64,000 bases of DNA from Vitrella brassicaformis CCMP3155. Taxonomy: Eukaryota > Protista > Chromerida. How positions within the stretch are numbered: the stretch's first letter is position 1; the number at the start of each line of letters is the position of its first letter. Position numbers and translations under genes: made by a program. The stretch spans positions 15,105 through 79,104 of the forward strand of contig CDMY01000424.1 in NCBI GenBank assembly GCA_001179505.1. The letters are read 5' to 3'. This document shows positions 1,744 to 32,964 of this stretch, one piece after another. The notes below the pieces were generated by a model that saw only the letters and a list, made by a program, of their open reading frames with translations, was not told where the DNA came from and searched no databases.

Positions 1744-1774
<31 letters not shown>

Positions 1775-2567: not shown

Positions 2568-2620
2568 GTTCACACATCCCATTTCCACACAAGGAGGAGG
2601 GAAAAGGGCTCTGGCGGATA

Positions 2621-2630
2621 TAAGCTCGCA
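2621..2630 (+). promoter_or_regulatory. TAAGCTCGCA element in the PARG-1/ART divergent intergenic region
   Basis: Same motif seen in five other divergent intergenic regions of this window. Confidence 0.55.
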
Positions 2631-2759
2631 GTTGAGGCGATCGGAATAGGAATATCGCGACTGACTCATTTCCTGCCTCTTCCTCCGTCCAGAAACGACT
2701 CCTTCTAGTCTGCTGCGACCAGATCTCTGTGAATTTGTGGTGATATCCGCCGTCTGCAC

Positions 2760-3373
2760 ATGCCTAACCCATCCTCGCGGCAGTCGACTGATGAGGCGTG
2801 TTTTCGATGCAAGGGGGACGCTCCCGCCGGCTGCGGGTCGTGCAGAGGCACGGGCAAGACAGCACATCACATCGTCTATCACGGCACCAACACGGAGGCG
2901 TCCAAAAACATCGACCTGGACGGCTTCTCCCTCAGCCTCTCAGGCATGTTCGGCCAGGCCTTCTACGTCACGGCCGACAGGTGCGCCAGCCCACGAACGC
3001 ACATCTAACACACTTTGAATGCAGGCTGTGTGTTTCAGGTCGAAATCTGTAGCATTTGCACGCCGGAAGGTCAAGCTTGAGGGCGGCCAGGGAGTGGTGT
3101 ACACGCTGCTTGTTGATGTGGGCAACATGAAGCAGCACAATGCTTCAGGCGAGTCGTCAGAACGAAAAGGATGGAAACCACGGACATGCAGTAGCTTTGT
3201 GTGTGTGTGTGAGCAGGCTGTTATGGTCGTCACAGGGCCGAGGGGTGTACCTGTCACGCTTGGCTGAATGACGGCTACGACAGCCAGTATGTGCCGCCCT
3301 GCCCGAATGGCGTGAAGCGAGAGGAAACTGCACTCAGGTCTGTCGCACAAATCAAAAGAACGCTCAAACGGGA
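2760..3373 (+). CDS. Small Gig2-like / PARP-catalytic-fold ADP-ribosyltransferase with N-terminal CxxC...CxxCxGxG zinc knuckle; 3' end runs into an assembly gap
   Basis: Exons 2760-2980, 3039-3148 and 3217-3373 splice in frame to ...CFRCKG..CGSCRGTG..IVYHGT..IDLDGFSLSLSGMFGQAFYVTADRSKS..VVYTLLVDVGNMK..AWLNDGYDSQYVPP..REETALR. This has the H-G-T, G-x-x-x-Y and acidic catalytic motifs of H-Y-E ARTs and a motif order matching the Gig2 family as I recall it. Confidence 0.8.
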
Positions 3374-3673
3374 NNNNNNNNNNNNNNNNNNNNNNNNNNN
3401 NNNNNNNNNNNNNNNNNNNNNNNNNNNNNNNNNNNNNNNNNNNNNNNNNNNNNNNNNNNNNNNNNNNNNNNNNNNNNNNNNNNNNNNNNNNNNNNNNNNN
3501 NNNNNNNNNNNNNNNNNNNNNNNNNNNNNNNNNNNNNNNNNNNNNNNNNNNNNNNNNNNNNNNNNNNNNNNNNNNNNNNNNNNNNNNNNNNNNNNNNNNN
3601 NNNNNNNNNNNNNNNNNNNNNNNNNNNNNNNNNNNNNNNNNNNNNNNNNNNNNNNNNNNNNNNNNNNNNNNNN
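3374..3673. other. Scaffold gap (300 N)
   Basis: Run of N. Confidence 1.
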
Positions 3674-5147: not shown

Positions 5148-7310
5148 TCATCCGCCGCTGACGAGTCTGGCCCTGAGTGCGGCCCCGTCACATGCCGCGG
5201 CGGTGGTCTTGTTGGCCTTGGAAGCTTGCGCCATGTTGTCCTGCTTGAGGTGGTCGATGCTCTTGTGGAACTGAGTGCCCTCCAACTTGTCCACATACAG
5301 ACAGGTGCGGGCCGTCACAAACAGCGCCTGCAGGACACACATGACAAGACAACGACACACACGTGGTGTGATGTGCTTTACCTCTGGTATCTCTCTGTCT
5401 CTGCGTGAAGGTGTGTGGTCCACGCACCTCCCAGATGGGCGTGGGGTCGTATCTGTGCAGCGGCCCCAGCACCTTCTTGAGCGCCTCTGTCGCCTCCTTG
5501 GCGTGATAAAAGGGAATCCTACAATGAATGCACAGACAGACAGAAAGACACAGCCTCACTCCACAGACGCTCATGTTGTTGTCCATGTCGCTTTAGGTGT
5601 GTTTACATACTTGGCATCGACGTGGTGCAGGACGTGTGTGCTGCCGATGTAGTGGTGCAGTTCATCCACCACCCAGGGGTAGGGACGGTCGATCGTAGAC
5701 AGAGCGCCCCGCAGCCACGTGAACGCATCGTCGCCATAGTGGGGGCAATCTGCACACACACACCACACGTACAGAAGCAAGGAACCGATAGAGAAACATT
5801 CTTTCCTTGTGGATGTCTGTAGGTTTCTCCCTCCCTCGTACCAGGGTGTGTGTGCTGCAGCCATGTGATGAGCACCAGCCATGCGTTGACGACGAGGTAC
5901 GGACCCACATACCACTGAAGCGGCAACCACCTGCACATACAGACAGACACATCCACCCACACCACAAGTTGCCATCAGTCTCAGTCCATCGACCAGCCAG
6001 CCCTTAGCTCCCTGCCTCCCTCCCTGACCATGACGTCATGGCCCCCCAGATGACATTGGCGGCGATGACGGCCCCGCAGCCCAGCCCCGATGCCGTCACC
6101 TTCCATCTGAAGTGCGGCGGGAACCTCTCGTTGTCGGGACCGTAAAAATGGCTGACCGGCCCATTAGCGGCGTCGAGGGGTTCGCCCCTGTAGTTGACGC
6201 GGCCGCCACCGACGGTCGACGTGAGGTACATGGGGTAGCCCATGAGGAAATACAACACGATCTCGACGATGGCAAACGCATCCTCTCCAATCAAGTCACT
6301 GCCGTACAGAGGGAGGGAAAGAATGGACAACCGTGTAATGAGAGAGAATGTGAGCTTGTCTGTCAGCTCAGCTTACGCCATCTTGGTGAGTTGGAAGGTG
6401 CTGTTTGGCGAGTGGACCTCCTCCTTGAGCTCGGGTGTGTAGGAGTCGCCGCGTGTCATGTGGTTGGTGAACTTGTGGTGCTTGGCGTGTGTGTACTGCC
6501 AGCTCCAGTAGGGCACCAGCAGACAGCTGTGGGCAATGAACCCCACGGTGTCGTTGATGGCCGTCGACTCCGAGAAGGCTCCATGACCACACTCGTGCGC
6601 AATGATCCAAGGACCGAACGCTATCGTGCCCTAATGGCATCAACCAACGTCATCAGCAGGCATCATGGTGCGGTGAGCTGTGTGATGGTCTGTGTGCCCT
6701 GCCCGGCTCACTTGCACGATGGCGTATGTGGTCCAAGCGAGTGTCCTCAGCAGCCAGTTGTGGCCGCACACCAGGGGGACGAGGTGGTACGTCAGCCATG
6801 CCGTCACCGCCAGGAAGAGCACATCGCGACTCAGGTACAACTGCACCCCACCCCTCCACACACACCGTGTCATGACGGCTGCAGTAGCTAGTATTTCCGC
6901 TCACTGACCAGTCCAGTGACGGCAGATCTCTTGCGGCAGTGTGGGGGGATGGCGTCATAGATCTCCTTCACCGTGGGCACCTGGCAACACACACGCAGGT
7001 AGGTATGTGCACTGACTGATGACGCCCCTCCCACTCAGCTCTGCTCGTCTCTGCATCGCACCCACCTTTGGCAGGTCCTCTTTGGCGTCCACCAGGTCGA
7101 GCGGGGAGGCCACAGCGTCCACATAGCTGCTGTCGCTCCTGCACACACCAAAGCACAAAAACAAGATGTCTGCTGCCTTGCTGACTGCCCCAGAGCCACT
7201 GCTGCTCACCTGACAGGCCGAGTGACGACGCGCTCGTGGATCCTGAGGCTGTCAGACAGCTCAGATCTTCCGCTGGCAGGGCCGTCAGACAGCTCAGGGG
7301 GAGGCGACAT
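5148..7310 (-). CDS. FAD2: Delta-12 (omega-6) fatty acid desaturase, FAD2-like, multi-exon
   Basis: Three His boxes: WIIAHECGHGAFS, WQYTHAKHHKFTN and HHYIGSTHVLHH..IPFYHAKEATEA. Also N-terminal PTVKEIYDAIPPHC and HYGDDAFTWLRGALSTIDRPY. Confidence 0.92.
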
Positions 7311-7380
7311 GGCGGCGCGCAGCTGCGTGTGCTGTCAGGCCTGCCTGTGCTCTCTGTCTCCTCTTTGCCTTCGCCCGAAA

Positions 7381-7408
7381 TTAGCTCGCACCGCAATCTT
7401 AGCTCGCA
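7381..7408 (+). promoter_or_regulatory. Two TTAGCTCGCA elements in the FAD2/PARG-2 divergent intergenic region
   Basis: ttagctcgca-ccgcaatc-ttagctcgca direct repeat. Confidence 0.55.
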
Positions 7409-7556
7409 CTTTTTTTTCCGTCGAGTTTTTCCTATTCCTGCGAAAAGAGGAGGATGCTCATCGTCGTGTCAGGATCCAGGCGTAACGATTTTTGACGTCA
7501 TGTTCCCCAGATCCAGCCTCTTTCACTATTCCCCGTTTGCAACACCACAGATATCG

Positions 7557-9476
7557 ATGCCCACCAGTATTCCCGTGCCGGTCGGCCGCGAGTGGCATGA
7601 CATCAAGCAGGTGCTCTCAAAGATCACAGGCGGCGTGAGAGACCCCCTGCAGCTCATGGTCGTGCTCAAGGAGGTCCAGCTGTGCAAGCGAGCGGTGTCG
7701 GGATCCCCTCATTCATTCAGTGGCGTTCCGCTGCTCTTCAAAGGCATTCCACCCGACGTCACAGCGCACTTCCTCAACCACACCCTGCCCATTATGGCCA
7801 GCGAGCTGATCCGCAGCAACCTCTCGGCAGGAGATTTGCCACACTACATCAGCCCCGCGTCGCAGCACAGGGCTGTGGCGCTCACGGCCCATCAGGTCTT
7901 CCTGCTGCTGTCGGCGGCCTTCTTTGGCATGTATGGGCCCACCCCCTTCGACACATGCAGCCGCGACATCAGCGGAGCGTCCATCAACTTCGGGCCGCTG
8001 TTCGACTCGGTGCACAAGTCCACGGCAGCGGCCAAGCTCCACTGCTTCATCCTCTACTTCATCGCCATGGCCGCCGCCGTCGAGAGATCAGATGAGCGAC
8101 AGCTGCGGCGCAACATCATCTTCAAGAGGCTGGACGGCGGGCGGCATGCCACAGCCGATCAGTGGGCACAGTCGACAGCCCGTCTGCTGCCCGTGAGGGT
8201 GATGGGATGTGCCGACCGCATAGAGTGTTCGCCGGGCCTGCAGGCCGACTTCGCCAACAGAGTGCTCGGCGGGGGAGTACTCGCATCAGGTGCACAACAG
8301 ACACACACACAGAGGGAGGGAGGAAGGTCGTGCAGGCAATGGCCATCTCTGTGTGTGTGTGTGTGTGTGTGTGCAGGGAGTGTTCAGGAGGAGATTCGCT
8401 TTGCCATATCGCCCGAGCTGCTCGTCGCACGGCTTATCATCCCGCCACTCAACGACACCGACGCCGCCGTCATCACTGGGACCAAACAATTCGCTTTTTA
8501 TTCCGGGTAAGGATACCACACAGACACTCCTCCCTGTCCACCTGTTGATTTAATTCAGGTACGGTCGGTCATTCTGTTGTGTGGGTGCGTGTGGGAGCGA
8601 GCGGCAGAGTGCTGTGGTGGCACTCGATGCCATCGACTTCAGAGGCCGCTCCCCGTGGACACAATACTCGGTGGCCTCGCTGCTCCGAGAGACCAACAAG
8701 GCCTTCTCGGCTGTGAGCGAGCTCGAATTGAAGAGCCTGCCATTCGCGACAGGTGAGTGGCATGGCCATGCCTCTCCTTTGGGTGATTGGTTTGTTGCTC
8801 GGCTGATTTGTGTCAGGGAATTGGGGCTGCGGTGTCTTTGGCGGCGATCCGCAGCTGAAGGCCCTCATCCAGTGGATGGCATCCAGCCAGGCAGGGGTGC
8901 TCATGCACTACTACCCCTTCGATGACAAGCGCATCAACGGCCTGGCCGTCGTGTGCCGTCTCATAGTGGCGGCGGGGTGGAGTGTGGGCGACCTCTGGCG
9001 GTTCATCAGCCGCGATGAGGACAACCTCCACCGATACGGCGTCTTCAAGTGCATCATGTACCACCTCCAGCACCATATGCAGGTGACTCTCTCTGTCTGC
9101 CTGTCTGGCAAGCACCGACCCAAGCTTTGGCGTGTGAATGTGTCCTTTCAGAGTTTGAGTCATGGTGTCGGTGTGCATGATCGTCGTCGCGTGGGGGCTG
9201 CATCGCACTATGGTGCTCTGCCATCATCCCTGGCACCCAATGACAGCTCCGTCACCAAGTGTAGTACCGCGACGGCCTTCGACAGAGACATGGAGAGGAC
9301 GGTGGACCAGTGCAAACAAGAGGTGAGTCGGCAGGACACCGAGACACGTGGATGTCATCGATTCGATGCCGTGAAATGTGTGAGTCATTCAGATGAGCGG
9401 TGCGGGTGCTGAGACACGTGAGCAGCCAGAGGATCATGACGATGAGGAGGAGGAACTGATCTCTGGCTTCGACTGA
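7557..9476 (+). CDS. PARG: Poly(ADP-ribose) glycohydrolase, paralogue 2 (multi-exon)
   Basis: [59 protein letters not shown] and ATGNWGCGVFGGDPQLK. The start may be 7500 or 7557; the acidic last exon ends at 9476. Confidence 0.92.
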
Positions 9477-16904: not shown

Positions 16905-17804
16905 CGGCTGCCTGCCTGCCTGCCTGGCGTGTCTGTCCACCCTCCTTGTTTTGCGGAGGGCTGGGCTGCGAGGGAGGGAAGGAGGGCTGGGGTGGGGTGG
17001 GCGGCTGTCCATGGAAGGCGGGGCGTGTGTATTGACTGTTTGCTGACAGACCTTTCATGTCTGGTGGGCTGTCTTGCAGTTTGAGTGTGTACAATCAGTC
17101 AGTGAGTGTGTTCCGTGTACCCTTGCTTTGCTGTTGCCACTTGTGCCTGCTGTGGGAGGGAGACGAGGCACACAGACACACCACAGCACCACGGGTGCAG
17201 TTGCTGCGAAGAGAGAGAAAGGCGAGATGTATCAGTTTTTGTGGGTGTGGTTGTAGTTGATCGACAGTATGTTGCAAGACCCTGCAACGACCACCCAAGT
17301 TTGTCAACTGTGGATTCACTCTGTAACCACAGCCGAATCAACGGTCCCATCCATAGTCACGCCATCACATGTCGGCTGACCCACACATCACTGACTGTTA
17401 ATTCGCTCCTTTCCGCGTTGTATGTAAAACTCTTTTTGACGCTTGTGACAAGGATACACAGGTACGCCAGGCCACAGTCATCATATATGGGCGAAAAATA
17501 CTCTCGACCAGCACCACAGAGGCACACTGAATGACTGTACACACGCAAATCAGTGTCGCATTAGGTCCATCGGGCCCCCCCGAGCCCCCACTGCTGCACG
17601 CCACACCTCTCTGCACACCAACATGCACTGCACAGACCCCGGTGAAGGCGTACTCACGATACAGCTGCATTGGCCAGAGGGAGAAAACCGCACCGAAAAG
17701 AGCGGGCCTACCACTGGTGGTGATACAGATGCCGACTCGGATCGAGCAGGAGGCACAATCACGCCACGAAGGATTGCGATAAGGCCGGCCGTCTGTCTGT
17801 CTTG

Positions 17805-20025
17805 TCATCGTCTGGCCGGCAGCACAGGCGGTGGGTTGTCGTGCTCCAGACGCTCGATGCCAAGCAGCTTGAGTGCCCACTTTTCATAGTAGGGGTCCGT
17901 GTCGCCCGTGTAGACCTTAAACAGGAAGTACTGCACGGCACGGCGGTGGGACACGCAAAGGAAAAAGATGAGGGCACGGCACCGACATAGATAGACACTA
18001 CATTGTGTCTGTGTGCCTGTGTGTACCTTCTCGAAGGCGATCTTGGCGAGTTGCGCCCACTTGCCCCGGCTGTGCCACGCCACGTTCCTTGGTGGAAGCT
18101 GGGGAAGAGCCAGGAAGACAGCCCCTTCGTCGCCGAAGTCAGTGATACACAACGCATTGAGCGACGGGATCTCCTTGGCCTCCTCGCCGCACATCAGAGA
18201 ACCTATGTTGTGTGCCGTTGCCGTACCCATCGTCTCTATCATGTAACTGACAGGCAGAGGAAGCAACACATGGAATGAATGAATGAATGAACGCGCTTTG
18301 GGTCTTTCCTTTCTCACCCACCCGGTCTTGGGTGCTCCCGTGGCGACCGGCGTGGTCTCGACGGGCGGGATGGCGGTAGCCACACCAACGACGAAGACAT
18401 TCTTGAATGCGGGGTTCTGCTGCATGGCGTTGCACAGCACGCACCCCTTGGCGTTGGTCAGCCCCAACTCGGCAAGCTTGGGGTTTTTGAGGAACCCCAC
18501 GCCCTCAAAGGGAGGAATGAAAACGCCATAATCGAAGGGGAGATCGTGCTTCATGGGCGGGTCGGAGGACGCCTGGCGCTCGGGCAGCTGCGTGAGATGG
18601 ACTGTGTCGGGTGAAACCTCATCGATGTGGGCGTTGGTAATCCACTTGATGTCGCGCTCCCGGAACAGACTCTCAATCAGACCTGATGGATGACACAAAC
18701 AACGAAACAACGATCTCTGTGCCCTCAGCTGGTCCCGGGCGTCTTACATGCGTACGTACCTTTGCTGTCGCCAACACCTCCCAATCCCAGGTGGCCCACA
18801 TATGGTTCAGAGCTCACTGACACGCACGGAAGCGCACCAACGCGAGCATCGGATGGAAGGGATGTGCACATCATGGTGGTGCCTACCGTAAGTAATAGGG
18901 ACGTATTTTCTCAGCTTCTTTTTTCGCAGCTCGTTGTCCATTATCATTGCGTGCTCGTATGCCGGCCCAAAGCACGACGCCCCCGGCGCTGCGCCAACCA
19001 CTATAGCGCCCTTCTTCTCCCGGGCCACTTTGTCACAAAAGGCATCCCACTTCTCAGCGGCCTTTTCAGCGTGCTCGCCGTTGCAGATCGACTCCGTGTA
19101 GAAGGCCGGTCCGAGACCTTTCACCTGGTCAAAGGCCAAGCGAGGGCCTGTTGCAACCACCTGACACCAAGGCAGCGAATGCGAAAGCGTTTGAAGGCTG
19201 CCTGCACTGCCTTTGAGAGCGTGTGTGTGGCAGAGCCACGGCCGTAGCGATGCACCAGGTAGTCGTAGTCAATCTGCTGCAGGTCCTCGGGTGCCCCCTC
19301 GCCCATGTCCCTGACGTAGAGGCGGTTGTCGGACGGCTCGAGCCGCTCAACGCTCGCGTGGCGGAAGTTGATGCCCTTCCTGTTCAACACACTGCCCAAG
19401 TCGAGCCTGATCTCATCTTTGGTCCTCGTACGCACCGCTACCCTGGCACACAGGCATATCGATTGGCGGCAGCGAAACCATGAGTGTGTGGGTCACGTCA
19501 CTTGGTGTGCTTACCATGGGCACGAGGGCGTGAATTCAAAGTACGGGCGGCTTGACAGGAGCGTGAGGGACACAGGGCGGCCATTGAGGGCCGCCTGGCG
19601 TTCCTTGACCACACCCATTATGTCGAATGCAGTGGACACGCCACCAATCCCCCCACCCACGACGACTATTTTGATGGGCTCCATGCCGCCAGCAACGTCG
19701 ACAGGAGCATCAGGCGTCGCCACTGACGTCGACGCGCTGCTCGACAGGCGATGACGGACAGAGGGCCTCGGCACAATAGACGACTGCACACACACAACAG
19801 GGAGAGCGTGAAGGTTGCAAATGCAAGCATGCACGCACGCGTGACCCTCGCAGCACCCACCAGCAGCAAACCCAGCCTCACCTTAGCTGCGGGTGGTTCG
19901 CCCTGCGCACCACCGTCTCTGCCACGGAATCTCCAGGGCTGGTGATGCGATGAGAAGGATGGATGAGCAGTGAAAGCTGCCGTCGAGTGCCACAGTGTCA
20001 TCACTGCCAAGCAGAATAGCACCAT
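17805..20025 (-). CDS. sqr: Sulfide:quinone oxidoreductase, bacterial type I-like, with signal peptide plus transit-peptide-like leader
   Basis: IVVVGGGIGG FAD loop, FEFTPSCPW, ATGPRLAFDQVKG, GAAPGASCFGPAYE, VFVVGVA, GAPKTGYMIE.M..A.NI, NALCITDFGD.G..F.ALPQLPPRN and KWAQLAKIAFEKYFL. Both redox cysteines are present. Confidence 0.92.
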
Positions 20026-20163
20026 GCCGCCAGCAGAGTGGCGGGGCCGGTCAGTCTTGCGCTTTCTCGCCATCAGCAGGCTCTCTGGGAAGCCGAATGG
20101 AGTAAGCTGCTGGTCCAGAGAAGCCTGTTGGACTTGTTGGACCCGGGAAGAGATCTGCTGCTC

Positions 20164-20173
20164 TAAGCTCGCA
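20164..20173 (+). promoter_or_regulatory. TAAGCTCGCA element in the SQR/CoADR-RHD divergent intergenic region
   Basis: ctctaagctcgcaaac. Confidence 0.55.
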
Positions 20174-20278
20174 AACGTTGGGACAACGCCCAGAGAATCG
20201 TTTCCGGGCTGGGCGTCGCTTTTCATCACTTCCGACAGCCCAAGTGAAGAACATCATCGCCTGATTCATCAAAACAAG

Positions 20279-23200
20279 ATGGCGAGAGGAAGCCCTCATG
20301 TCACTCCCAGATCTGGGACGAAGATAGTAGGCATGCATTGCTGTTCGTGTGTTGTTGACAAGCCAGAGCTGGCCAATGGGGCCGACAATTCATCGGGTCG
20401 TGCCACACGTGTGTCGGTGTGTGGTGCAGGTTATTATTGGAGGCGTGGCTGGAGGGGCCACTGCGGCTGCTCGACTCCGACGCCTCGATGAGAACTGTCA
20501 AATCGTTATGTTTGAGCGCGGTGAGGAAAAAAAAGAGGCGGGCCGCATGCAGACGAGGGCCACTGACCGATCGGTGTTCGCGTTGCTTTTAGGGCCGTAC
20601 GTGAGCTTCGCCAACTGTGGACTCCCGTAGGCACCAAGGGGCGGACACACGCACATACACAGAGGGTGTGGTGTGCTGTTTGTCTTACCACAGTTACTAC
20701 GTGGGTGGCATCATCGAGAAGGCCGATGACCTGCTGGTGACCACACCCATGCGGCTGGTCCATCGATACAACGTAGGCATGACACCAGAGAGAGAGAGAG
20801 AGAGAGAACGTGGGTCGTGTTGACATTCAAACCGGTTTGTCTGTCTGTGTGTGTGTGTGTGGTCAGGTCGATGTCCGCATCCAGACGGAGGTGATTGGCA
20901 TCGACGCCACAAACAAGACCGTCAAGGCTAAACACATCTCTTCAGGTACAGTAGGAGGAGCACCATCGGGACCAATCTCTCTCCATATCCATCCATCGTG
21001 CACTCACGTGTGTGTGGTCACCGTCAACCAGGCGAGATGTACGAGGAGACGTACGACTATGTGCTCCTGTCCCCCGGTGCCGAGCCGATCCGTCCGCCGC
21101 TTCCCGGCATCGACCTGGGTGGCGTCTTCTCTGTGCGGTCGATCCCCGACGTGCAGCGCATCGTCAGCTGGTGCAAGGACCCGTCGCGCGCTGAGCGCCT
21201 CAAGAAGGGCACTGCCGTCGTGGTTGGCGGCGGCTTCATCGGACTCGAGGTACACACACCGTGACCACCCTGCCGTGTGCATCAGTTTGTATACGGATGG
21301 GTTTGTTTCTGTGAGTGTGCAGATGGCGGAGAATTTGGACCATCTGGGCATGAAAGTCGTGGTGGTAGAAATGCTCCCACAGGTGGGCGGGTGGGCGGAC
21401 ACAGGAGAGGGCACGTGTGGCTGTCTTCCTGTGATGTGTTTCCCACCGTCTGTGTGGATCAGTTGATGCCCCCACTCGATTATGAGGTGCATGATACACA
21501 CACCGACGGCACAGCCACTGTGGATCGGCGAAAGGAGGCATTTGTGCGTCGTGTGCTTGTGTTGTGTGTGCAGATGGCAGTGACGGTTCAGGAGCATGTC
21601 ATTCGTCGCGGCGTGGAGTTGTGTCTCGGAGATGGTGTGGCTGGTTTTGAGCAGATCGACAACACTGACAGGTCAGACCATCTGCAGCCCACCTAAAGTG
21701 GCGCACTTGCGGATTCAGTGTGGCTATGTGTCCTTGGCAGGCTGACCGTCAAGACCAGCAGTGGGCGCGCAATTCCCTGTGATTTGGCCATCCTGTCTAT
21801 CGGCGTCAAGCCTGAGAGCAAACTCGCGCAGATGGCCGGACTCAAACTGGTACGAACACGACACACCTTCGTGCAGCCAGCCTGTCTCTCCGTCTGTGCG
21901 TGTGTGGCTCCACCAGGGTTTCCGGGGCTCCATCATCACTGACGAGCGGATGCGCACGTCAGACCCTTCAATCTATGCGGTTGGCGATGCCGTGCAGATC
22001 AAGGATTTCGTCCTGAAGGTCGACACCCTGGTGCCGCTGGCTGGTCCCGCCAATCGGCAAGCCCGCGTGGCGGCCGACAACATGATGGGCCGAACGGAGA
22101 GCACCTACCGTGGGTGCCAGGGCACGGCCGTGTGTGGTGTGTTTGGGTGGACGCTGGCCATGACGGGCGCCACGCAAAAGACACTCGACAGGCACAACTA
22201 CGGGTCAGTGAGGGTAGCACAATGGATGGATGGATGCGGCACAGCAACACGGACAGATGGATGGACGCAAGTGCGTGTGGATGGATGGTGCGGGCAGGTC
22301 CTACGGCTGTGTTTATGCCCACCCACTCAATCACGTCGGGTAGGAACAGACACACGATCCATTCATTCACTGACTGCTGGTGAGGGGGGCGCTGCTTGAT
22401 GACTTACTGACACGTCAGCTACTACCCGGGTGCCAAGAGCGTCCACATCAAACTGGTCTTCGACACCAAGACACGCAAAGTGCTCGGCGCACAGGTGAGG
22501 GAGGGGGGGAGGGAGGGAGGGAGGGAGGGAGCGAGGCATGCAGATGGGTAGAGAGGTGCGGGATCTGCATATGGCCGGACGTCTGTGGGATTGCTGGTTG
22601 GCTGCTGCAGGCGTGTGGTGTGAGTGGAGTGGAGAAGCGCATCGACGTGCTGTCGACGTACATCCAGATGGGCGCCACAGTGGACGACCTGGCTGAGGCC
22701 GAACTGTGCTATGCCCCACAATATGGCGCTGCCCGCGACCCCATCAACCACATAGGGATGATTGCACAGAACTTCCTCGAGGGCGACTACGCGCCTCAGT
22801 CAACGCCAGGTGGGGTGGGGCGCCTGATGTGAGTGACCCCAAACCACTCCCTCACACACCATCAGCCATCTGGGCTCTGACGATGTTGTGTCTTCAGAGA
22901 CGCTCAAGGAGGGTATCATCCTCGACGTTAGAAGGTGTGAAGACATCCACAAGGCAGCAAGCAAGAAAGAATGAATCATTGTCGGTGTGCGCGTGCGTGT
23001 ATCGGTTGGTTGGCGGTATGTCCGTGTATGCAGCGACAAGGAGATCGACAAGACGCACGAGAAGATTGAGCACTCCATAAGGGTGCCACTCGACTTCCTC
23101 AGAGCCAAAATCGATGAGCTGCCCAAGGGCACACCCATACACGTACACAACACACCCACACACACACACACACAGGGGGCGAGACAGCCCTCGCTCAACT

Positions 23201-25159
23201 CATTCGTTCCTCTCTGTCGGCTGTGTTTGTCGTCCATCCATGCACGATTCAGACTGTGTGTCGGGCGGGCCAGCGTGCCTACGTGGCTTGCAGGATCCTC
23301 CGACAGCTGGGATACAACGCATCGTAAGCNNNNNNNNNNNNNNNNNNNNNNNNNNNNNNNNNNNNNNNNNNNNNNNNNNNNNNNNNNNNNNNNNNNNNNN
23401 NNNNNNNNNNNNNNNNNNNNNNNNNNNNNNNNNNNNNNNNNNNNNNNNNNNNNNNNNNNNNNNNNNNNNNNNNNNNNNNNNNNNNNNNNNNNNNNNNNNN
23501 NNNNNNNNNNNNNNNNNNNNNNNNNNNNNNNNNNNNNNNNNNNNNNNNNNNNNNNNNNNNNNNNNNNNNNNNNNNNNNNNNNNNNNNNNNNNNNNNNNNN
23601 NNNNNNNNNNNNNNNNNNNNNNNNNNNNNGGATGGATGGTGCGGGCAGGTCCTACGGCTGTGTTTATGCCCACCCACTCAATCACGTCGGGTAGGAACAG
23701 ACACACGATCCATTCATTCACTGACTGCTGGTGAGGGGGGCGCTGCTTGATGACTTACTGACACGTCAGCTACTACCCGGGTGCCAAGAGCGTCCACATC
23801 AAACTGGTCTTCGACACCAAGACACGCAAAGTGCTCGGCGCACAGGTGAGGGAGGGGGGGAGGGAGGGAGGGAGGGAGGGAGCGAGGCATGCAGATGGGT
23901 AGAGAGGTGCGGGATCTGCATATGGCCGGACGTCTGTGGGATTGCTGGTTGGCTGCTGCAGGCGTGTGGTGTGAGTGGAGTGGAGAAGCGCATCGACGTG
24001 CTGTCGACGTACATCCAGATGGGCGCCACAGTGGACGACCTGGCTGAGGCCGAACTGTGCTATGCCCCACAATATGGCGCTGCCCGCGACCCCATCAACC
24101 ACATAGGGATGATTGCACAGAACTTCCTCGAGGGCGACTACGCGCCTCAGTCAACGCCAGGTGGGGTGGGGCGCCTGATGTGAGTGACCCCAAACCACTC
24201 CCTCACACACCATCAGCCATCTGGGCTCTGACGATGTTGTGTCTTCAGAGACGCTCAAGGAGGGTATCATCCTCGACGTTAGAAGGTGTGAAGACATCCA
24301 CAAGGCAGCAAGCAAGAAAGAATGAATCATTGTCGGTGTGCGCGTGCGTGTATCGGTTGGTTGGCGGTATGTCCGTGTATGCAGCGACAAGGAGATCGAC
24401 AAGACGCACGAGAAGATTGAGCACTCCATAAGGGTGCCACTCGACTTCCTCAGAGCCAAAATCGATGAGCTGCCCAAGGGCACACCCATACACGTACACA
24501 ACACACCCACACACACACACACACAGGGGGCGAGACAGCCCTCGCTCAACTCATTCGTTCCTCTCTGTCGGCTGTGTTTGTCGTCCATCCATGCACGATT
24601 CAGACTGTGTGTCGGGCGGGCCAGCGTGCCTACGTGGCTTGCAGGATCCTCCGACAGCTGGGATACAACGCATCGTAAGCAGACAGACAGACCCACCGCA
24701 CTGACTCACCCTAAGTAGTTTCGATCCGTGCAACCTTCCTTCCCTCTCTGGTTGATGTTGGAATGGATGGATGCCTGCAGGTACGTGAATGGCGGGTGGC
24801 ACACGTGGAAGGTAAGTAAGACGCCCAGGCTGGCAGGCAGGCAGGCAGGGACGACAGGAGATGCTAATGCGTTCTCACCCACCGACTTGCTGTGTCCATG
24901 TGTCTTTGCATAGGTACTCAACCTCCCGCTCGACAAGCTGTGCGAACGCCCAGAGGCACCTGACGATGACGAGTCCTTCCCAAAAAGCTGGGGTGCCGAC
25001 ATTGAGCTGAGTGGTAAGACAAACAGCACACCACACCCTCTGTGTATGTGCGTGTGTCCGCCCCTTGGTGCTGCCTACGTGTACGTCTGTCTGTTTGTGT
25101 GCGTCTTGTTGATTGCAGGCAAGGATTGCCATGACATGGTCTACCGACGCATTTGGTGA
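20279..25159 (+). CDS. CoA-disulfide/persulfide reductase fused to a C-terminal rhodanese domain (CoADR-RHD / Npsr-like); 3' exons duplicated across the gap by assembly
   Basis: KIVIIGGVAGGATAAARLRRLDE, YVSFANCGLPYYVGG (redox Cys), VVVGGGFIGLEMAE, IYAVGDA, PLAGPANRQAR, YYPGAK, LCYAPQYGAARDPIN, then IILDVR and the rhodanese loop CRAGQRAY..LRQLGY..VNGGW. Confidence 0.93.
23330..23629. other. Scaffold gap (300 N)
   Basis: Run of N. Confidence 1.
23630..24680. repeat. Apparently exact duplicate of 22279-23329 flanking the gap (probable assembly artefact)
   Basis: Constant offset of 1351 bp, identical ORF translations, and I found no mismatches by eye even in microsatellite-containing introns. 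Confidence 0.85.
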
Positions 25160-26119
25160 TGAATGGGGAGGCAGGCATGATTTTTGGCTGACTGCTCTCC
25201 AGGGACAGTTGGGTGGGTGGGTGGATGAGTGGGCGCCACTCACTGGGTGGCTCAGGACTTTGAGCTGTGGGCGCATGGCTGCCTTGGGTGGGTGCTGTGG
25301 GTGCGTGATGGGATGCTGTGCATGCCCCTGCATGCAGGCAGCAGGCTAAGCGGAGAGTGCGTGGGAGGGGGTGGGTGGGTGGGTGACGGTCTTCTTTCTC
25401 TGCACTATTTTTCGTTAGCTTCATTGGGTGACATACATACGTAAAACATACAACCAACAACAGCGTGATGCTCTTGATGATGTTCGCAGAGTCACTCATT
25501 CAGTAACGTACGTATTCAGTAGGTACGTACGTACCGAAGCCATCAAGACATACATACCCAAGCCGGCAAACACCATCCACTCAGTCAGTTCGACTCAACC
25601 ACGGTGGACGACACATCCATCGATGGCGCACAGTGAAACCTGCTAGAAAGGGTCAGGGAGTGGCGTATGTGAACGAGCCACTGAGCTGCTTCTGAGCTAT
25701 GCACACTCTCGCTCATGATTCATGCATAGGGCGACCACCCATGGACATGTTCTTTTCGGCGGATATGCGATGCCGCTGCTAGGCGTACAGTGCCCACAGC
25801 TACCCCACCCGCCACTCGCCCTCCCTGTTCTCGAGCTTTCTCTTCTTCCCCCGCGTCGTCTCTCTCTCTGCAAGCAGAGCCGCCGGCTGCCGCATCATCT
25901 GCCGAAGATGACAACGCCGCCCTGATTGCCAAGCGGGAAGCCGAGGAGGCCGACTATCGGTATGCCGTGATGTTCCAAGAAAAGGCTGATGATGGATGAG
26001 TTGGCAGCCGAGCTTCACAGTGAGGGTCGAACAGAACCGGGCGTAACGACCGTTGTACCGTACAGCCACATGTAAATCTGGTGTGATTTCTGGCGTATAT
26101 ATTTCCCAGTTCAGTGACG

Positions 26120-27829
26120 ATGCCGCGGCTGTGTGTGGCCCTCTTCCTCCTTGCATCGGCTGCCTTCGCCGCAATCGACTTCCTCCCCACTGCCGATCAG
26201 AACGGTAAGCCACGCGGTGTTCTCTCTTGACAACATCCTTGTTGAGCCTTGTGCTTTCTCAGGTGTCAGTGACCATGAGGTCTGTATTATCGGCGCCGGC
26301 CCCTCAGGCGTGGGCGCGGCTCACCACCTCGTGCAAAAGGGCTACTCCAACATCCTGATGCTGGAAAAGCTCGACAGAATCGGCGGCAAATGCAGGGACA
26401 TCGAGCGAGTGGACAACGCGAACGGAAAGCCCGTCAACCGCACCTACCCCCTCGGTCAAATTGTCATCATACGGGACTACGAAGAGATCCGCGAGCTCGC
26501 CGACATCTACGGTCAGAAATTCGAACTGTTCGCGTTGGGTGTGCCGCAAGACTTCTACGTCGACTTCAACGCCAAACCGCTGTTCACCCCTGCTCCACCC
26601 TCATGGCCCACCATCGCCAGCTTCAGCCCCCTCGAACTCAACAGCATCGAGGACATCGAGGAGATCACGGTGGCCCTCACCGCCGCTACGGCGTATACGG
26701 CCATATGGAAGTCTTACGTCGCCATTGACGAGAAGACCGGCGAGCCGGATCCAAAGCGACCTCTCGGCGATGAGCCGACTCTTTCATCCATCGACTTCGA
26801 CCGCTACCCAGAGCTTGCCGACCCGGCCAACAAGTTCATTGCAGACCGCTTCACAGAGTACGGCCTCGGTCCGAAGCACATCGAGTTCATGCAGAGAGCC
26901 CAATTCCCGCTGGAAGCGTCCGGCTACCTTTCTGCCGATTTCACTCCGATGGCGTATTTCTTCAAGGCCTTCACGCCACCTCTGCTGGTGGAGGGTGTAT
27001 TGGGCACCATTCAAAGAATAGTCGGAGGCTGTACAGCGCTTCTGGAGGCCATGGTGGACACGCTGTCTGCCAAGGGAAAGCTAGAGGTCTTGCTCAGTGC
27101 GGAGATCGTCAACACTGTGCGAGAGCCCGATCAGCCGTCACTGGTCCAGCTGTCGGACGGCACTGAAAGAACCTGCGATCGGATCATCGTAGCGTTTCCT
27201 CAGATCACGGCGGACATGCAGTTTTTGGACTTGGACGAGGAGGAGAGCGATGTGTTCGGGAGAGTTTTCATCGCGCCATACGCCTCCACGCTTCTGGACT
27301 TCTCGTACGAGAAAATGCCCAATACCAAGAGCTCCAGGCTATATGGCAATCTCGATACGTCGGTCGAGCCTCACGCTTATCGATCAGTCGTCGGTAAAGG
27401 CCAGCCGGCGGTGATAGCCGCACCTTACGGTTCGCAGGCAGGAGCCGGCCTTCTGATCTACCAGAGTTATGATCGACAGCAGGGACTTTGGAACGAGACG
27501 CTTAAGCAGGACAGCGTGCAGATCGTGACGGACATGTTCTTCGACGGCGATGCGAGTGAGTACAAGGCCAACTTGACCGAAGTCGACTTTTGGACCTACG
27601 TGAGTATTCATTCAAAGGGAGAGGGACCCCATCATCTGTTCACACTTTGTATCCTTCCTGCATGCAGTTTCCCCACGTGAGTGGCGAAGAGATGCGGGCG
27701 GGCTTCTACCAACGGCTGGAGGCGCTGCAGGGCAACAGGAAGACCTACTTCACAGGCGGGCTGTGCAACTTCGACACCCTCGAGCTTTCCATGCTCTACA
27801 GCCGACACCTGGTTAAGACATACTTCTGA
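26120..27829 (+). CDS. Secreted FAD-dependent oxidoreductase of the polyunsaturated fatty acid isomerase (PAI/PFI)-like family
   Basis: Signal peptide MPRLCVALFLLASAAFA, then IIGAGPSG..LEKLDRIGGKC. The C-terminus FWTYFPHVSGEEMRAGFYQRLEALQGNRKTYFTGG..F..LE....YSRHLVKTYF closely follows the P. acnes PAI C-terminal pattern as I recall it. Exons are about 26120-26204, 26263-27599 and 27667-27829. Confidence 0.7.
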
Positions 27830-30126
27830 GTTTGCATGACAGCGCCCACTCGCTACCAGAGAAAAGGTACGCATGCTCACACACACACACACACACACAC
27901 TCATATAGATCCGTGTCTCACATACTTGTCATCTGTCTCTCTCTCTCTGCGCCTGTGTGTATGGGGTAGATTTGGAGTTTTATGACATCATTCTTGATCC
28001 AGATGAGACAGAGGGCGTTTTGCTCCGGCCAGATGTGTGTGTGTGTGTGTGTGTGTGTGTGAGCAGCCCCCCGATAGGGGACGCTCGATTTAGTTGCGCA
28101 CCGACACAGGATTGGGAGCCTCTTTTGAGGCCCCGCAACTCCTGTGCCGGGGACCAGGGCGGTCATGCCGGCAGTTCCCTGGATTTGTTCGGGAGGGGGG
28201 GGCCCCCCTGGATGGAGGGCGATGGTTTGCATGCATAGCATGCTGCCGGTGCCCAACCACCCTTGTTCTGCTTTGTTTTCTTGGTTGTGTCTCTTTCGTT
28301 CTCATGTCTCTTGTTTGTCTGCCTCGTGTCTCATGTTTGCCTGTCTTTTCGGGGTGTTTTTCCGTGCATGTGTCTGTGATCGTCCTTCCTGCCTTCTGTT
28401 TGTTTTCTTTACCTCAGTCCTTGTTTGTTTGTTTGTTTGTTTGTTTGTTCACAAGACATTCTCACTTCAACCGTTCTCATGCGGCCCCCTCATGGCTTGC
28501 CTGTCCATTATGGTGTGGGTTTGGTTGGTGCTGAAGGCCTACCTGTTTGATAGAGGTGCTGACCGGGCTGGACCGCGGATGTGTGTGTGATACCCCGCCA
28601 CCGTTCGTGTGGCTGCAGACACACAGGGATGGCTCTGGTCGGTCTTTCTTTAAAGCTTTCGTGCACCCCTTTTTTACCTCTCTGCGTACGTACACCTGTG
28701 TGTGGGTGTGTGCGGGTGTGTGTGGGTGTGTGCGTGTATACATGTGGTCAACATGTGTGCACGCACTTCTCTCTCTGTTTCTGGCCCATGTGTCTCTCTC
28801 GGTGCCACTTCGTGTGTGTCAGTATGTATGATGCATGTGCATAGCTCTTGATGTGATGGTGGACGATGCCTAGCAGCAGGTACTGGTCGCTGGCCTTCTC
28901 TGTGGGCCCGGGCTGCTGATGGTCTGCGGTTGGTTGGTTGGTTCAGGTTCATGTGCCTGGCTGCTGAGAGAGGCCCCGTCCGTTGTCTCCCTGCATGTGT
29001 GCATGTTTGCATGTGTGTGTCTCTGTGTGTGTGTGATGCCTCCCTCGGACAAGACAGTTGTCGAAAGGATGCATGCATGCATGAGTGGATGTGTGTCTGA
29101 TAGCTGGGGAGGTGAGTGAGGTCAGGCGGGGCCTCGTATGTATTGATTGTGTCTTTTGTGGGCGGTGTGGTGATGCAATTCATACATAATGATAGCCAAT
29201 CCGTTGCGACTGACTTGAGACGCCTAATATATCTTTTGAGGTGCTCGCCCACACATACATACATACATACACCGCACCCGCTCGCCCGCCCGCCCGCCTC
29301 GTCCACTAAAAAGTGACGACCGGCCGGCTGGCTGGCTGCCGTGATTGATTGATGGGTGGATGCGTACATATATACATACAGACATAAATACCCCCACCCT
29401 TTTGTCCGTGTGTTGCATGTGTGTACGTGTCATGTGTGTGTACTTTCTCTCTCTCCGTGCCGTGCTACTTTTGCAAGCTTGTAGCGATCTTGCCTGTCTC
29501 TCTGCCTGCCAGGAAGGAGGGCCCGACCTACATACATACATACATGTCTGTCCGTCTCTCTGTCTGTCTGTCTGTCTGGCTGGCTGTTTTCAGGCTGAAT
29601 TATACAAGGGGGCAGAGGGCCGGACGGGAAGGAAAGGCAGAGCACAGCCACCCCACCAGAGAGACCCCCGCACACAATACACACACCGCACGAAATAGCG
29701 TACGTACATACTGGCAGACAGGCACTACCCATCCCTCCCCCATACCCACACAAACACGGCTCTCATTAGAGCAGCCGCATAGCAGCACCGAAATCGATTG
29801 GGGTAGTTGTGGGTGGGGATGGGTCGTGAACTTCTCCATCGACCTGTGTGCATGTTTTGTGGGTGTGTTGGTGCGTCGTACGGTGGTGCATGTTGTGTGT
29901 GTGTGTGCCTGCCTTTAAGCCGACTTCGTCGCTCGCTTCTCTTGGCTGGGGGAGTGGAGGAGAGGAGGCCCCAATCGATGGCCATCTCGTTCACTCAACC
30001 GCCCGCAGCCGACTGACCTCACCTCATCTCACCTATCTGTCTGTCATGTCAGCGGCCCTCCTGGCTGTCTCTTTCCCTGCCTTTCCCTACATGTGTTGAT
30101 GGATGTTCGTATGTGTGGGGGGTCTT

Positions 30127-30471
30127 GGTGGACTTTCACTCTGTCTACGATGGAGGGAAGTTGACCGAGTCGGCCTGTTGGTTGGGAGCGCTGTGCTCTT
30201 GTGCTGCTGTGGTGTCTTGTCTGTGGCCTTTTCTGAGAGAGAGAGAGAGAGAGAGGGAGAGAGGAAGGAGTGTCTGTCTGCTTGCCTGTTCACCTGTTTG
30301 TCCGTTGTCATGCCATTGGTTATCTCATGCTCATACGAGGGTCGCAAGTGGCCCAGCCACCGAAAGCACCATCAAAACATGCTGCTGCGATTGACTGGGG
30401 CCCTCTCTCCCTCACCCCATCCATTCACCACCAACACCTTTTGTAAGATAGCTCACGTACTCTCTCACGTG
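30127..30471. repeat. About 345-bp non-coding direct repeat, copy 1
   Basis: Near-identical to 31251-31594, including the (GA)n tract. Confidence 0.9.
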
Positions 30472-31026
30472 CTTTCCCCACACACAGGACACATCACACC
30501 ACACCAGAGAGGCGTATGCATGTGCGTGCCGTGCTAAATTGACTGACCGGCTGGCCGTGCGTGGCGTGGCGTGGCGTGGCGTGGCGTGGATGGATGGATG
30601 GATAGGACGTATATGCGATCGAATGATGGATGGCCCAGCTGTCGGTGCCCTCCACCTGTGGCAGGGTGGCGTCACGCGCTGCCACACACCGTGCTGAGAG
30701 GCGTCGTTTGTCTGTTGGTATTTGGTGTGGCGGCACGGAGCTTTCTTTCTCGGAGACCGTCGCCAGGGAGGGCGGTTTGGCTGCTGAGTGGTGGGTCGGT
30801 GCATGCAGGGATGAACATACATACATACATGCATACATGCATACTTACACACCACACAGGGGTGGGTGAGAGGATGGGTGGGTGGACGCCAGAACATGAC
30901 ACGAGACGCGCAGGCAGGGGCAATGTGGGCGTGTGTGCCGGGGGGTGACACAGCAAACTGAGCGGTTCTGTCTGGATGAACCGCCAACTTTTTGAGCATG
31001 TCGCAACACACGGGTAGATTTGACTG

Positions 31027-31083
31027 CCATGGACTACAGCCGATAGATACCTGGTTGAGACATACTTCTGAGTTCGCATGACA
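31027..31083 (+). pseudogene. Relic of the 3' end (last codons, stop and start of 3' UTR) of the PAI-like gene
   Basis: ccatggactacagccgatagatacctggttgagacatacttctgagttcgcatgaca versus 27789-27841 ccatgctctacagccgacacctggttaagacatacttctgagtttgcatgaca. Confidence 0.75.
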
Positions 31084-31250
31084 TATACATACATATGCAA
31101 ATGTGTTGTACATACAAAGCTGCGTACATCCACGTGTGTGTGAGACTCGATCTACTATGCTCTTCCTGACCGGATGGCTGGCTGGCTGGCTGACTTACAC
31201 ACTCGATTGGAGTGTGTGAGATGAGTCGAGTAACACGTGTTTGTGGGGTG

Positions 31251-31594
31251 GTGGACTTTCACTCTGTCTACGATGGAGGGAAGTTGACCGAGTCGGCCTG
31301 TTGGTTGGGAGCGCTGTGCTCTTGTGCTGCTGTGGTGTCTTGTCTGTGGCCTTTTCTGAGAGAGAGAGAGAGAGAGAGGGAGAGAGGAGGGAGTGTCTGT
31401 CTGGTTGCCTGTTCACCTGTTTGTCCGTTGTCATGCCATTGGTTATCTCATGCTCATACGAGGGTCGCAAGTGGCCCAGCCACCGAAAGCACCATCAAAA
31501 CATGCTGCTGCGATTGACTGGGGCCCTCTCTCCCTCACCCCATCCATTCACCAGCCACACCTTTTGTAAGATAGCTCACGTACTATCTCACGTG
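31251..31594. repeat. About 345-bp non-coding direct repeat, copy 2
   Basis: Near-identical to 30127-30471. Confidence 0.9.
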
Positions 31595-32664
31595 TTTGTA
31601 ATTGGCGTGGCGTGGATGGATGGATAGGAGCTCACTCACCTAGGGATGCCCAGTGGGGAGTGAGTGAAGAGAGGGTCCTGATTGATGGTGGGTGAGTGAG
31701 GGACACAGAATATGCCTGGTGAGGGCCATGGCCATCTCGTTCACTCAACCCCCCATTTCAGTTGCTGATGGTTAAAATTCGTCATCGATGGTGGTGCGCG
31801 TGTTGCGACTACTGACAGATGGGATACATGGTGTTGACGGCAGACTTGTGTCCATATACGTGTGTGTCTGAAGGCCATGATGATTGGTCCTTGCATGGAT
31901 CCATGCACCGTGTGTGATCATGCACACAACACCCATACGGACACACACAGGCCGACGTGCCAGGCTTGGCAACCCTGGCTGGCCACACGAGCCCATGCGA
32001 TCCTCAGCCGAGCCCGCGGCTGGGGCTCGAACACACCCAAATTCTACCACTAGACACCCTGACTGGCTACAGATGCTCGGATGGACACATCGATGTATCT
32101 AGAGACACCCAGATCGGATCAGACAGACACGCACTGTATGTGGTGTGCTGTTGGCTTATCACGGGGTCTCAGGCCATCACAGCCGCACCGCTACAAGTAG
32201 TGTGTGAGAAGAATGTAGTTGATACAGTCTGTCTGTCTGCCTGCCTCGCCTCGGCGCACACCGACATGCACCGAAATGACCGACAAAAACGACTTAGGGT
32301 GTAGGGTTTGGGCAGCCACTCATCCATACACTCGAGTAACCAATATCGATACACTCCACTCCATCCATCCATCCATCCAAACAAACAAATTAACAAACAA
32401 ACAAAAAACAAACAGGACGCACACAGACAGCGAGATAGAGAGAGAGACAGACAGACACGGACGAACAAAGACAAGAGACCCACTCCCCCCCTCCCACACC
32501 CTCATGTAATGGCACGAACGGGTGCACAGGCGAAAGAGGCCGGCAACAGCGAATGGAGCGATCAATAGACTCGTACGCACAGCCGGGCAGACAGACAGGG
32601 AGACAGACAGACAGATTAGATACACTATCACTCTTTGTCTGCCCGGCCTACGTGCAATACATGC

Positions 32665-32964
32665 NNNNNNNNNNNNNNNNNNNNNNNNNNNNNNNNNNNN
32701 NNNNNNNNNNNNNNNNNNNNNNNNNNNNNNNNNNNNNNNNNNNNNNNNNNNNNNNNNNNNNNNNNNNNNNNNNNNNNNNNNNNNNNNNNNNNNNNNNNNN
32801 NNNNNNNNNNNNNNNNNNNNNNNNNNNNNNNNNNNNNNNNNNNNNNNNNNNNNNNNNNNNNNNNNNNNNNNNNNNNNNNNNNNNNNNNNNNNNNNNNNNN
32901 NNNNNNNNNNNNNNNNNNNNNNNNNNNNNNNNNNNNNNNNNNNNNNNNNNNNNNNNNNNNNNNN
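32665..32964. other. Scaffold gap (300 N)
   Basis: Run of N. Confidence 1.

Follow-up and report, generated by a model that had tools for sequence, protein, structure and literature searches.

A bacterial-type sulfide:quinone oxidoreductase gene with a putative complex-plastid leader in the chromerid alga Vitrella brassicaformis

The chromerid Vitrella brassicaformis, a photosynthetic relative of malaria parasites, possesses a nuclear, intron-bearing and expressed gene for a sulfide:quinone oxidoreductase (SQR) that, judged from its sequence, is a complete type I enzyme with intact catalytic residues and is preceded by a leader of the kind that addresses proteins to complex plastids. The gene lies on the minus strand of a 64,000-nucleotide stretch of the strain CCMP3155 assembly GCA_001179505.1 (contig CDMY01000424.1, positions 15,105 to 79,104), which is referred to below as the window and whose own numbering is used throughout. 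We regard targeting to the stromal side of the plastid as the best reading of the leader and as a reasonably probable one. A public gene model of 545 amino acids was known beforehand; what appears to be new is the presence in a eukaryote of a type I SQR with a complex-plastid-like leader.

The gene model, which was built from the raw sequence, runs from 20073 or 20025 to 17805 and comprises eight exons separated by seven GT-AG introns of 70-98 nt (n=7; Table 1). Exon 1 (20025..19882) encodes MVLFCLAVMTLWHSTAAFTAHPSFSSHHQPWRFRGRDGGAQGEPPAAK and exon 2 opens with SSIVPRPSVRHRLSSSASTSVATPDAPVDVAGG, after which the Rossmann fold begins from MEPIKIVVVGGGIGG; the leader peptide quoted in an earlier note on this DNA, the original prediction, turned out to be an exact reading of the minus strand with exons 1 and 2 joined across the 98-nt intron. 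The SQR stretch is present in eight public sequencing runs, four of which carry approximately 0.46-0.59 of the sampled words, a proportion equal to the share of exons. When the transcript contigs of these four runs were aligned with positions 17300-21300 of the window, the modelled introns were skipped at the modelled positions with zero mismatches: the leader intron (joint 19783/19882) was spliced in four runs out of four, and each of the other six introns in two to four runs. The JGI transcript contigs L001 and L002 have the same start base and translate to the same SQR protein, and positions 75-1760 of L001 form a single open reading frame (ORF) of 561 amino acids whose translation ends in the genomic model. 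The GC content of the coding sequence (59.8%) may be set against the 59.6% published for Vitrella transcripts. Seven spliceosomal introns, eukaryotic flanking genes and spliced transcripts together lead us to reject bacterial contamination as the source of the gene.

Three independent assemblies have their 5' contig ends at 20147-20150, and, with the reservation that contigs are unable to prove transcript ends, this extent means that the transcript includes the in-frame AUG at 20073 and excludes the AUG at 20226. Reading of the sequence between 20150 and 20073 revealed no ATG besides that at 20073 itself. The AUG at 20073 has C at -3 (CTGCTGATGG), whereas the AUG at 20025 lies in a stronger context, GGCGGCATGG, and since the contexts differ in this way both protein forms may be made; the hydrophobic core of the leader is retained in either of them. 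The form that starts at 20025 is the 545-amino-acid public gene model in ESM Atlas. The original prediction had taken 20025 as the start and had worried about upstream methionines. This worry is now largely removed, as a start at the sole other AUG of the transcript (20073) would merely extend the protein by a basic n-region, with the putative signal peptide left intact, but 20025 is not the first AUG.

That the mature protein is an SQR had been proposed from the sequence and is borne out by PDB matches and by the spliced transcript contigs, which make it a real, expressed type I enzyme. End-to-end PDB matches were obtained with the enzymes of Acidithiobacillus ferrooxidans (3sz0/3kpk, E 2e-105) and Aquifex aeolicus (3hyv, E 3e-96), the next match, that of Acidianus (3h8i), being at only 3e-21. 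The NCBIfam type III SQR model gives 61 bits versus a cut-off of 525, and Pfam finds Pyr_redox_2 alone, at residues 102-429. The protein falls outside the eukaryotic type II SQOR/SQRDL clade, its best relatives being bacterial type I enzymes. The loop that binds flavin adenine dinucleotide (FAD) and three cysteines align with their A. ferrooxidans counterparts (Table 1), His246 and His316 are also conserved, and the aligned residues presumably have the functions that structural work on the A. ferrooxidans enzyme assigned to their counterparts. The C-terminal helices of 3sz0, which are responsible for monotopic membrane binding, are matched by residues 508-548; in type I SQRs such amphipathic helices anchor the enzyme to one membrane leaflet. 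With this set of residues in place, the algal enzyme is probably active.

The leader comprises 97 residues (81 when counted from the second AUG) encoded by exon 1 and the start of exon 2. The n-region, present in the long form only, has 16 residues, six of them basic. The h-region that follows has only 12 residues at a 9-mer mean of 2.99 on the Kyte-Doolittle (KD) hydropathy scale, and thus it looks like the core of a signal peptide and falls short of the length of a transmembrane helix. The Phe stands at +1 if cleavage takes place after Ala33; the alternative site HSTA/AF would put it at +2. The 64-residue spacer that separates it from the mature enzyme contains 14 Ser and Thr, 6 Arg, 1 Lys, 4 His, 3 Asp, 1 Glu, 8 Pro and 8 Ala, with three Arg versus one Asp in the first 22 residues, and its hydropathy reveals no second hydrophobic segment. 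An amphipathic matrix presequence was looked for at the N-terminus, which has a strongly hydrophobic core instead.

This extension is absent from approximately 210 bacterial homologues: the GxGxxG loop starts at residue 8 in 203 of the 211 homologues longer than 400 amino acids, and at residue 107 in the algal protein. It also lies outside the fold, as the ESM Atlas model (pTM 0.82) has structural matches to bacterial SQRs that begin at residues 96-100, the Pfam domain begins at residue 102, and no Pfam or NCBIfam domain is found in residues 1-101. Look-alikes of exon 1 were not found in a sequence index, a blank that carries little weight. The anatomy suggested originally, i.e., a signal peptide, Phe and a transit-peptide-like stretch, is upheld insofar as the leader is transcribed, spliced in frame, situated downstream of the first AUGs and of a kind published for chromerids (PMC6668581).

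How often such a pattern arises by chance was gauged with a crude rule that demands a hydrophobic 9-mer with a mean KD of at least 2.5, a site with small residues at -3 and -1 followed by Phe, and a net charge of at least +2 over the next 25 residues. The window has, over its six frames, 412 open stretches that start with ATG and reach 80 codons or more, and three of them passed the rule: both starts of the SQR gene and one stretch in repetitive non-coding DNA near 30.6 kb. With two of the three passes belonging to SQR, the pattern of signal peptide, Phe and basic stretch is well above chance.

The repetitive region is worth a separate remark. Positions 30100-31630 of the window are low-complexity DNA with near-duplicates at approximately 30103-30540 and 31212-31630 and with GAGA/GTGT runs. 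The chance ORF that starts there (ATG 30613, plus strand) mimics a signal peptide, a Phe and a basic stretch and gives an idea of the false-positive rate to be expected when leaders are picked by rule.

In chromerids, plastid import uses a signal peptide followed by a transit peptide, with Phe at +1 of the cleavage site (PMC6668581). Two Vitrella leaders from the supplement of that work may be placed beside the leader of SQR: in ferredoxin (Vbra_13812) the signal peptide MLPSIIASALLGFLLPLVGA is followed by FVPQTFSPSLSPIQRLRSRSAVPRRPHSV, i.e., LVGA precedes the cleavage site and FVPQTFSPSLSPIQRLRSRS follows it, and in cpSRP54 (Vbra_22360) a long basic n-region leads to LLLAVLPLIQTLA, cleaved before FVLRPASRFVLRRPAAF (QTLA, then FVLRPASRF). 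A contrast is offered within the window by a flavin amine-oxidase-like protein encoded 6 kb away, in which the signal peptide MPRLCVALFLLASAAFA is followed by the Rossmann fold approximately 25 residues later, without a spacer; judging by its sequence, this protein is probably secreted or resident in the endoplasmic reticulum (ER), such as an amino-acid or amine oxidase.

The nearest relatives of the algal SQR are proteobacterial. In two word-index searches of 5.8 billion proteins they share 46-53% identity with it, the sole match above 53% being the gene's own product, and the named relatives among the best 120 matches all belong to Alpha-, Beta- or Gammaproteobacteria, including Caenispirillum, Rhodospirillum, Methylomonas, Methylotuvimicrobium, Arenimonas, Methylocystis and Sulfuricella; no cyanobacterial sequence is present among these 120 matches, whether named or unnamed. 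Scans of GTDB genomes and JGI metagenomes returned bacterial loci only, at 40-51% identity, and likewise no cyanobacterial relative. No eukaryotic orthologue was found in the protein searches or in either scan, with the qualification that the second protein search covered lengths of 309-982 amino acids and could miss shorter fragments such as the Chromera K17218 fragment Cvel_17813 (listed in PMC6668581). Proteobacterial relatives, together with seven spliceosomal introns and eukaryotic neighbours, point to lateral acquisition from a proteobacterium and not to inheritance from the cyanobacterial ancestor of the plastid. The comparison with cyanobacterial SQR drawn in the original prediction consequently survives as an analogy of function and fails as a statement of ancestry.

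The gene of the best bacterial match (P0121, on contigs L011, L012 and L013) lies between the gene of an ArsR/HTH_5 regulator, which immediately precedes it, and that of a YgaP-like membrane protein, which follows it, with an RND efflux pair adjoining. Such an arrangement is typical of bacterial loci that respond to sulfide, and none of it was transferred to the alga.

From these sequences we infer a route that runs from signal-peptide cleavage through plastid import to plastoquinone as the electron acceptor and to a physiological role. The predicted ER signal peptide, with its basic n-region and 12-residue h-region, would be cleaved after HSTAA. This would leave Phe as the first residue of a transit peptide that is 64 residues long, hydroxylated, basic and acid-poor and that would bring SQR through the inner membranes of the plastid to the stroma. 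In that compartment the enzyme may be anchored through its amphipathic C-terminal helices to the thylakoid or the inner envelope membrane, on the stromal face, a placement suggested by the lack of a third, hydrophobic signal for the lumen. With FAD bound, it would convert H2S to sulfane sulfur carried by the pair Cys279/Cys480, and the electrons released would go to the quinone of the membrane, plastoquinone in the case of a plastid. The leader itself would have been gained after the lateral transfer in the form of a new first exon and the start of exon 2. Thylakoid-lumen targeting was considered as well and rejected, as neither a second hydrophobic nor a twin-arginine signal is present beyond the transit-peptide-like stretch.

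Two further points favour stromal targeting: SQR needs a membrane that bears quinone, and it sits behind a predicted signal peptide, which makes the plastid the obvious candidate and would exclude direct delivery to mitochondria or the cytosol. Several points weigh against it. Type I SQRs of this bacterial clade are usually assayed with ubiquinone analogues. The CoA-disulfide-reductase/rhodanese-like product of the adjacent gene, which would be a natural partner of SQR, has no leader, and any partnership between the two would have to cross compartments. The crude rule was also passed by a non-coding ORF, and a composition rich in Ser, Arg, Pro and Ala is the default translation of DNA with 60% GC. 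The bias towards GC at third codon positions is weaker in the leader (0.63) than in the mature part (0.75), and without an orthologue in the protein, GTDB or metagenome searches conservation of the leader has nothing to be compared with. Finally, Phe at +1 is strong in Chromera and less conserved in Vitrella (PMC6668581).

Some of these points would also suit a protein whose signal peptide is real and whose 64-residue spacer is a mere linker, with SQR residing in the ER or other endomembranes, the vacuole, the cell surface or an outer plastid compartment and never reaching the stroma. The signal-peptide-like start is the strongest feature of the leader, and the spacer has a composition near the GC-rich default and a weak codon bias, all of which this explanation accommodates. 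We nevertheless consider it unlikely: the secretory flavoprotein of the same window does without such a spacer, the Phe at +1 and the basic, acid-poor start of the spacer follow the plastid pattern, and an SQR in a compartment that has no quinone pool would presumably be left without an electron acceptor.

A mitochondrial location, either sole or shared with the plastid, appears to us quite improbable. Under this explanation the basic N-terminus and the short hydrophobic segment would resemble a bipartite presequence for the inner membrane or intermembrane space, and the enzyme would deliver its electrons to ubiquinone, in the manner of every eukaryotic SQR so far characterised to our knowledge. 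The long form opens with six basic residues in twelve, the closest bacterial relatives come from ubiquinone-using proteobacteria, and a language-model search puts mitochondrial SQR clusters first, at a non-discriminating 0.97 versus 0.96. The published work on chromerids likewise puts SQR in the respiratory chain (PMC6668581). The SQR concerned is Vbra_5597 (K22470), a eukaryote-type enzyme that belongs to the mitochondrial reference set of Vitrella and for which ASAFind reports no signal (PMC6668581), and its presence there speaks against a mitochondrial role for the protein described here. Moreover, the hydrophobic core and the small residues at -3 and -1 are typical of ER signals and not of matrix presequences, the second AUG, which is in the better context, yields a form without any basic n-region, and the leader as a whole resembles the published plastid leaders of Vitrella. 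It is very improbable that translation begins at Met98 (MEPIKIVVVGGG) and that the upstream part is 5' untranslated region, giving a leaderless, cytosolic, membrane-peripheral enzyme as in bacteria, for although the gene-calling pipeline picked Met98 on transcript contigs (P0001, 464 amino acids, identical to the mature part) and the context of this AUG is the same as that of the second AUG, ribosomes would have to bypass two in-frame AUGs, one of them in a strong context, and further AUGs besides, the 97 upstream codons are open even across the spliced intron, and the public 545-amino-acid model takes an upstream start.

With stromal targeting as the preferred reading, the function of the enzyme can be considered, and we do so tentatively. 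A laterally acquired proteobacterial SQR might allow H2S to reduce the plastoquinone pool of a eukaryotic plastid directly, which would create a path from sulfide to photosystem I (PSI) or a chlororespiratory, detoxifying one; we think this possible but somewhat doubtful. The enzyme could detoxify external sulfide that would otherwise inhibit photosystem II (PSII), it could recapture sulfide that originates from sulfite reduction in the plastid, or, by analogy with cyanobacterial SQR, it could provide electron input to PSI via the plastoquinone pool. The choice of quinone, protection of PSII and driving of PSI by this SQR are speculation on our part. A plastid homogentisate solanesyltransferase is listed in the supplement of PMC6668581. 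In cyanobacteria, the SQR of Synechococcus PCC 7002 feeds PSI through the plastoquinone pool (PMC12466478), and that of Oscillatoria limnetica, according to the account of Arieli et al. (1994) given in PMC11089139, feeds plastoquinone and supports sulfide-driven PSI photosynthesis.

In the gene adjacent to SQR (Table 1), the first ATG is at 20279 and the first intron spans 20327-20429. The transcript contig of this gene begins at 20184, so that approximately 34 nt separate the contig ends of the two genes, a spacing suggestive of a very compact divergent promoter. Its protein begins with MARGSPHVTPRSGTKIVIIGGVAGG, read as MARGSPHVTPRSGTKI followed by VIIGGVAGG, with no targeting leader. When all open pieces of window positions 20279-25300 were compared by tblastn with eight bacterial SQR loci, no homologue of this gene was found beside SQR in any of them, and thus nothing indicates a joint transfer of the two genes. 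Four assembly gaps of exactly 300 N each are present in the window (3374-3673, 23330-23629, 32665-32964 and 37072-37371), one of them inside this neighbouring gene and another inside the region of a FAAL-ACP-reductase-like gene.

Table 1. Features of the SQR gene, its leader and its product, followed by other genes of the window (window numbering).
Feature	Position	Strand	Basis
SQR exons 1-8 (stop included)	20025-19882, 19783-19515, 19442-19256, 19160-18887, 18816-18760, 18682-18322, 18246-18027, 17930-17805	-	genomic model
5' untranslated region up to contig ends, ATG-free	20074..20150	-	contigs of X1, X7, L001, L002 end at 20147-20150
Intron 1, within leader, 98 nt, GT..AG, phase 0	19784..19881	-	joint in contigs of 4/4 runs
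First in-frame AUG (20073) and basic n-region MARKRKTDRPRHSAGG	20026..20073	-	transcript contigs contain AUG
Second AUG (20025) and h-region MVLFCLAVMTLW, 12 residues	19990..20025	-	sequence
c-region HSTAA, T at -3 and A at -1 of putative signal-peptidase site	19975..19989	-	rule-based only
Phe at +1 of putative cleavage site	19972..19974	-	sequence; Phe motif of chromerids in PMC6668581
Transit-peptide-like stretch, part 1 (rest of exon 1), TAHPSFSSHHQPWRFRGRDGGAQGEPPAAK	19882..19971	-	composition
Transit-peptide-like stretch, part 2 (start of exon 2), SSIVPRPSVRHRLSSSASTSVATPDAPVDVAGG	19685..19783	-	composition
Mature type I SQR, residues 98-561, exons 2-8	17805..19684	-	identical to P0001; PDB and Pfam matches
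FAD-binding loop GGGIGG, residues 107-112	19640..19657	-	GxGxxG motif of N-terminal Rossmann fold
Cys242 (SIC..H motif)	19083..19085	-	aligned with A. ferrooxidans Cys128
Cys279 (GASCFGPAYE)	18972..18974	-	aligned with A. ferrooxidans Cys160
Cys480 (NALCITDFGD)	18147..18149	-	aligned with A. ferrooxidans Cys356
C-terminal amphipathic helices GKWAQLAKIAFEKYFLFKV...KWALKLLGIERL, split by intron 7	17847..18065	-	aligned with 3sz0 C-terminal helices
Pyridine-nucleotide-disulfide oxidoreductase gene, CoA-disulfide-reductase/NADH-oxidase type, multi-exon, head-to-head with SQR	20184-25159	+	sequence
Flavin amine-oxidase-like gene (ATG 26121, intron 26207-26262)	26121-27680	+	Pfam Amino_oxidase, NAD_binding_8
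Poly(ADP-ribose) glycohydrolase-like ORF	1578-2882	-	Pfam PARG_cat_N, PARG_cat_C
Poly(ADP-ribose) glycohydrolase-like ORF	7236-8510	+	Pfam PARG_cat_N, PARG_cat_C
ORF with phosphopantetheine-binding domain, then NAD_binding_4 (thioester reductase), part of FAAL-ACP-R gene	36936-39194	-	domains

Cyanobacteria and anoxygenic bacteria are known to feed electrons from sulfide into their photosynthetic chains. Among the open-access papers searched we found no report of a plastid-addressed SQR in any eukaryote, of sulfide-driven electron input in plastids or of this gene. Sulfide, which poisons PSII and cytochrome oxidase, builds up at night in reef sediments, microbial mats and microbialites. Vitrella and its relatives are found in these three habitats (PMC12888705). 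If the plastid location is true, SQR would provide a concrete mechanism of sulfide tolerance in algae of this kind and a clear case of a bacterial gene that gained a complex-plastid address by exon addition, and a eukaryote might gain an anoxygenic-type electron path from sulfide to PSI so far known only from cyanobacteria. Even with another location, it is a second SQR, of bacterial type, missing from the published metabolic maps of chromerids: the table of chromerid respiratory chains lists Vbra_5597 only and has an empty row for the bacterial type (K17218) in Vitrella, and neither this table nor the other supplements of that work contain the SQR with the plastid-like leader (PMC6668581). 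The enzyme described here is in this sense an uncatalogued second SQR of Vitrella.

Among known systems, the algal enzyme is closest in its mature part to the type I SQRs of A. ferrooxidans (3kpk, 3sz0, 3t2y and others) and A. aeolicus (3hyv), with which it aligns over mature residues 6-455. The GxGxxG loop, Cys128, Cys160, Cys356, His132, His198, Glu166, Phe394 and the two C-terminal amphipathic helices of the A. ferrooxidans enzyme are all present in it, while Phe357 is replaced by Ile at a position that is variable in bacterial homologues too. Unlike these bacterial enzymes, it is encoded in the nucleus by a gene with seven spliceosomal introns and is longer by a leader of 97 residues at the N-terminus and a tail of 13 residues at the C-terminus. 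With the mitochondrial type II SQR/SQOR represented by Vbra_5597, to date the sole type of SQR that has been assigned a place in the metabolism of chromerids, it shares the reaction and the flavoprotein superfamily, but it is of a different SQR type, the two being set apart by their listing in the published table and not by sequence alignment. It belongs to the same enzyme class as the SQRs of O. limnetica and Synechococcus PCC 7002 and may play a comparable role in a thylakoid-bearing compartment, with electrons passing from sulfide to the plastoquinone pool and further through b6f to PSI; in contrast to them, its sequence is closest to those of Alpha- and Gammaproteobacteria, and the likeness is one of function only. 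The leader in turn resembles those of Vbra_13812 and Vbra_22360, in which small residues end the signal peptide, Phe comes next and 30-70 acid-poor residues rich in Ser, Pro and Arg precede the mature domain, and it shares a long basic n-region with cpSRP54. It differs from the published Vitrella plastid leaders in having one Asp and one Glu within the first 27 residues of the transit-peptide-like stretch and in preceding an enzyme that was apparently acquired laterally and is without plastid ancestry.

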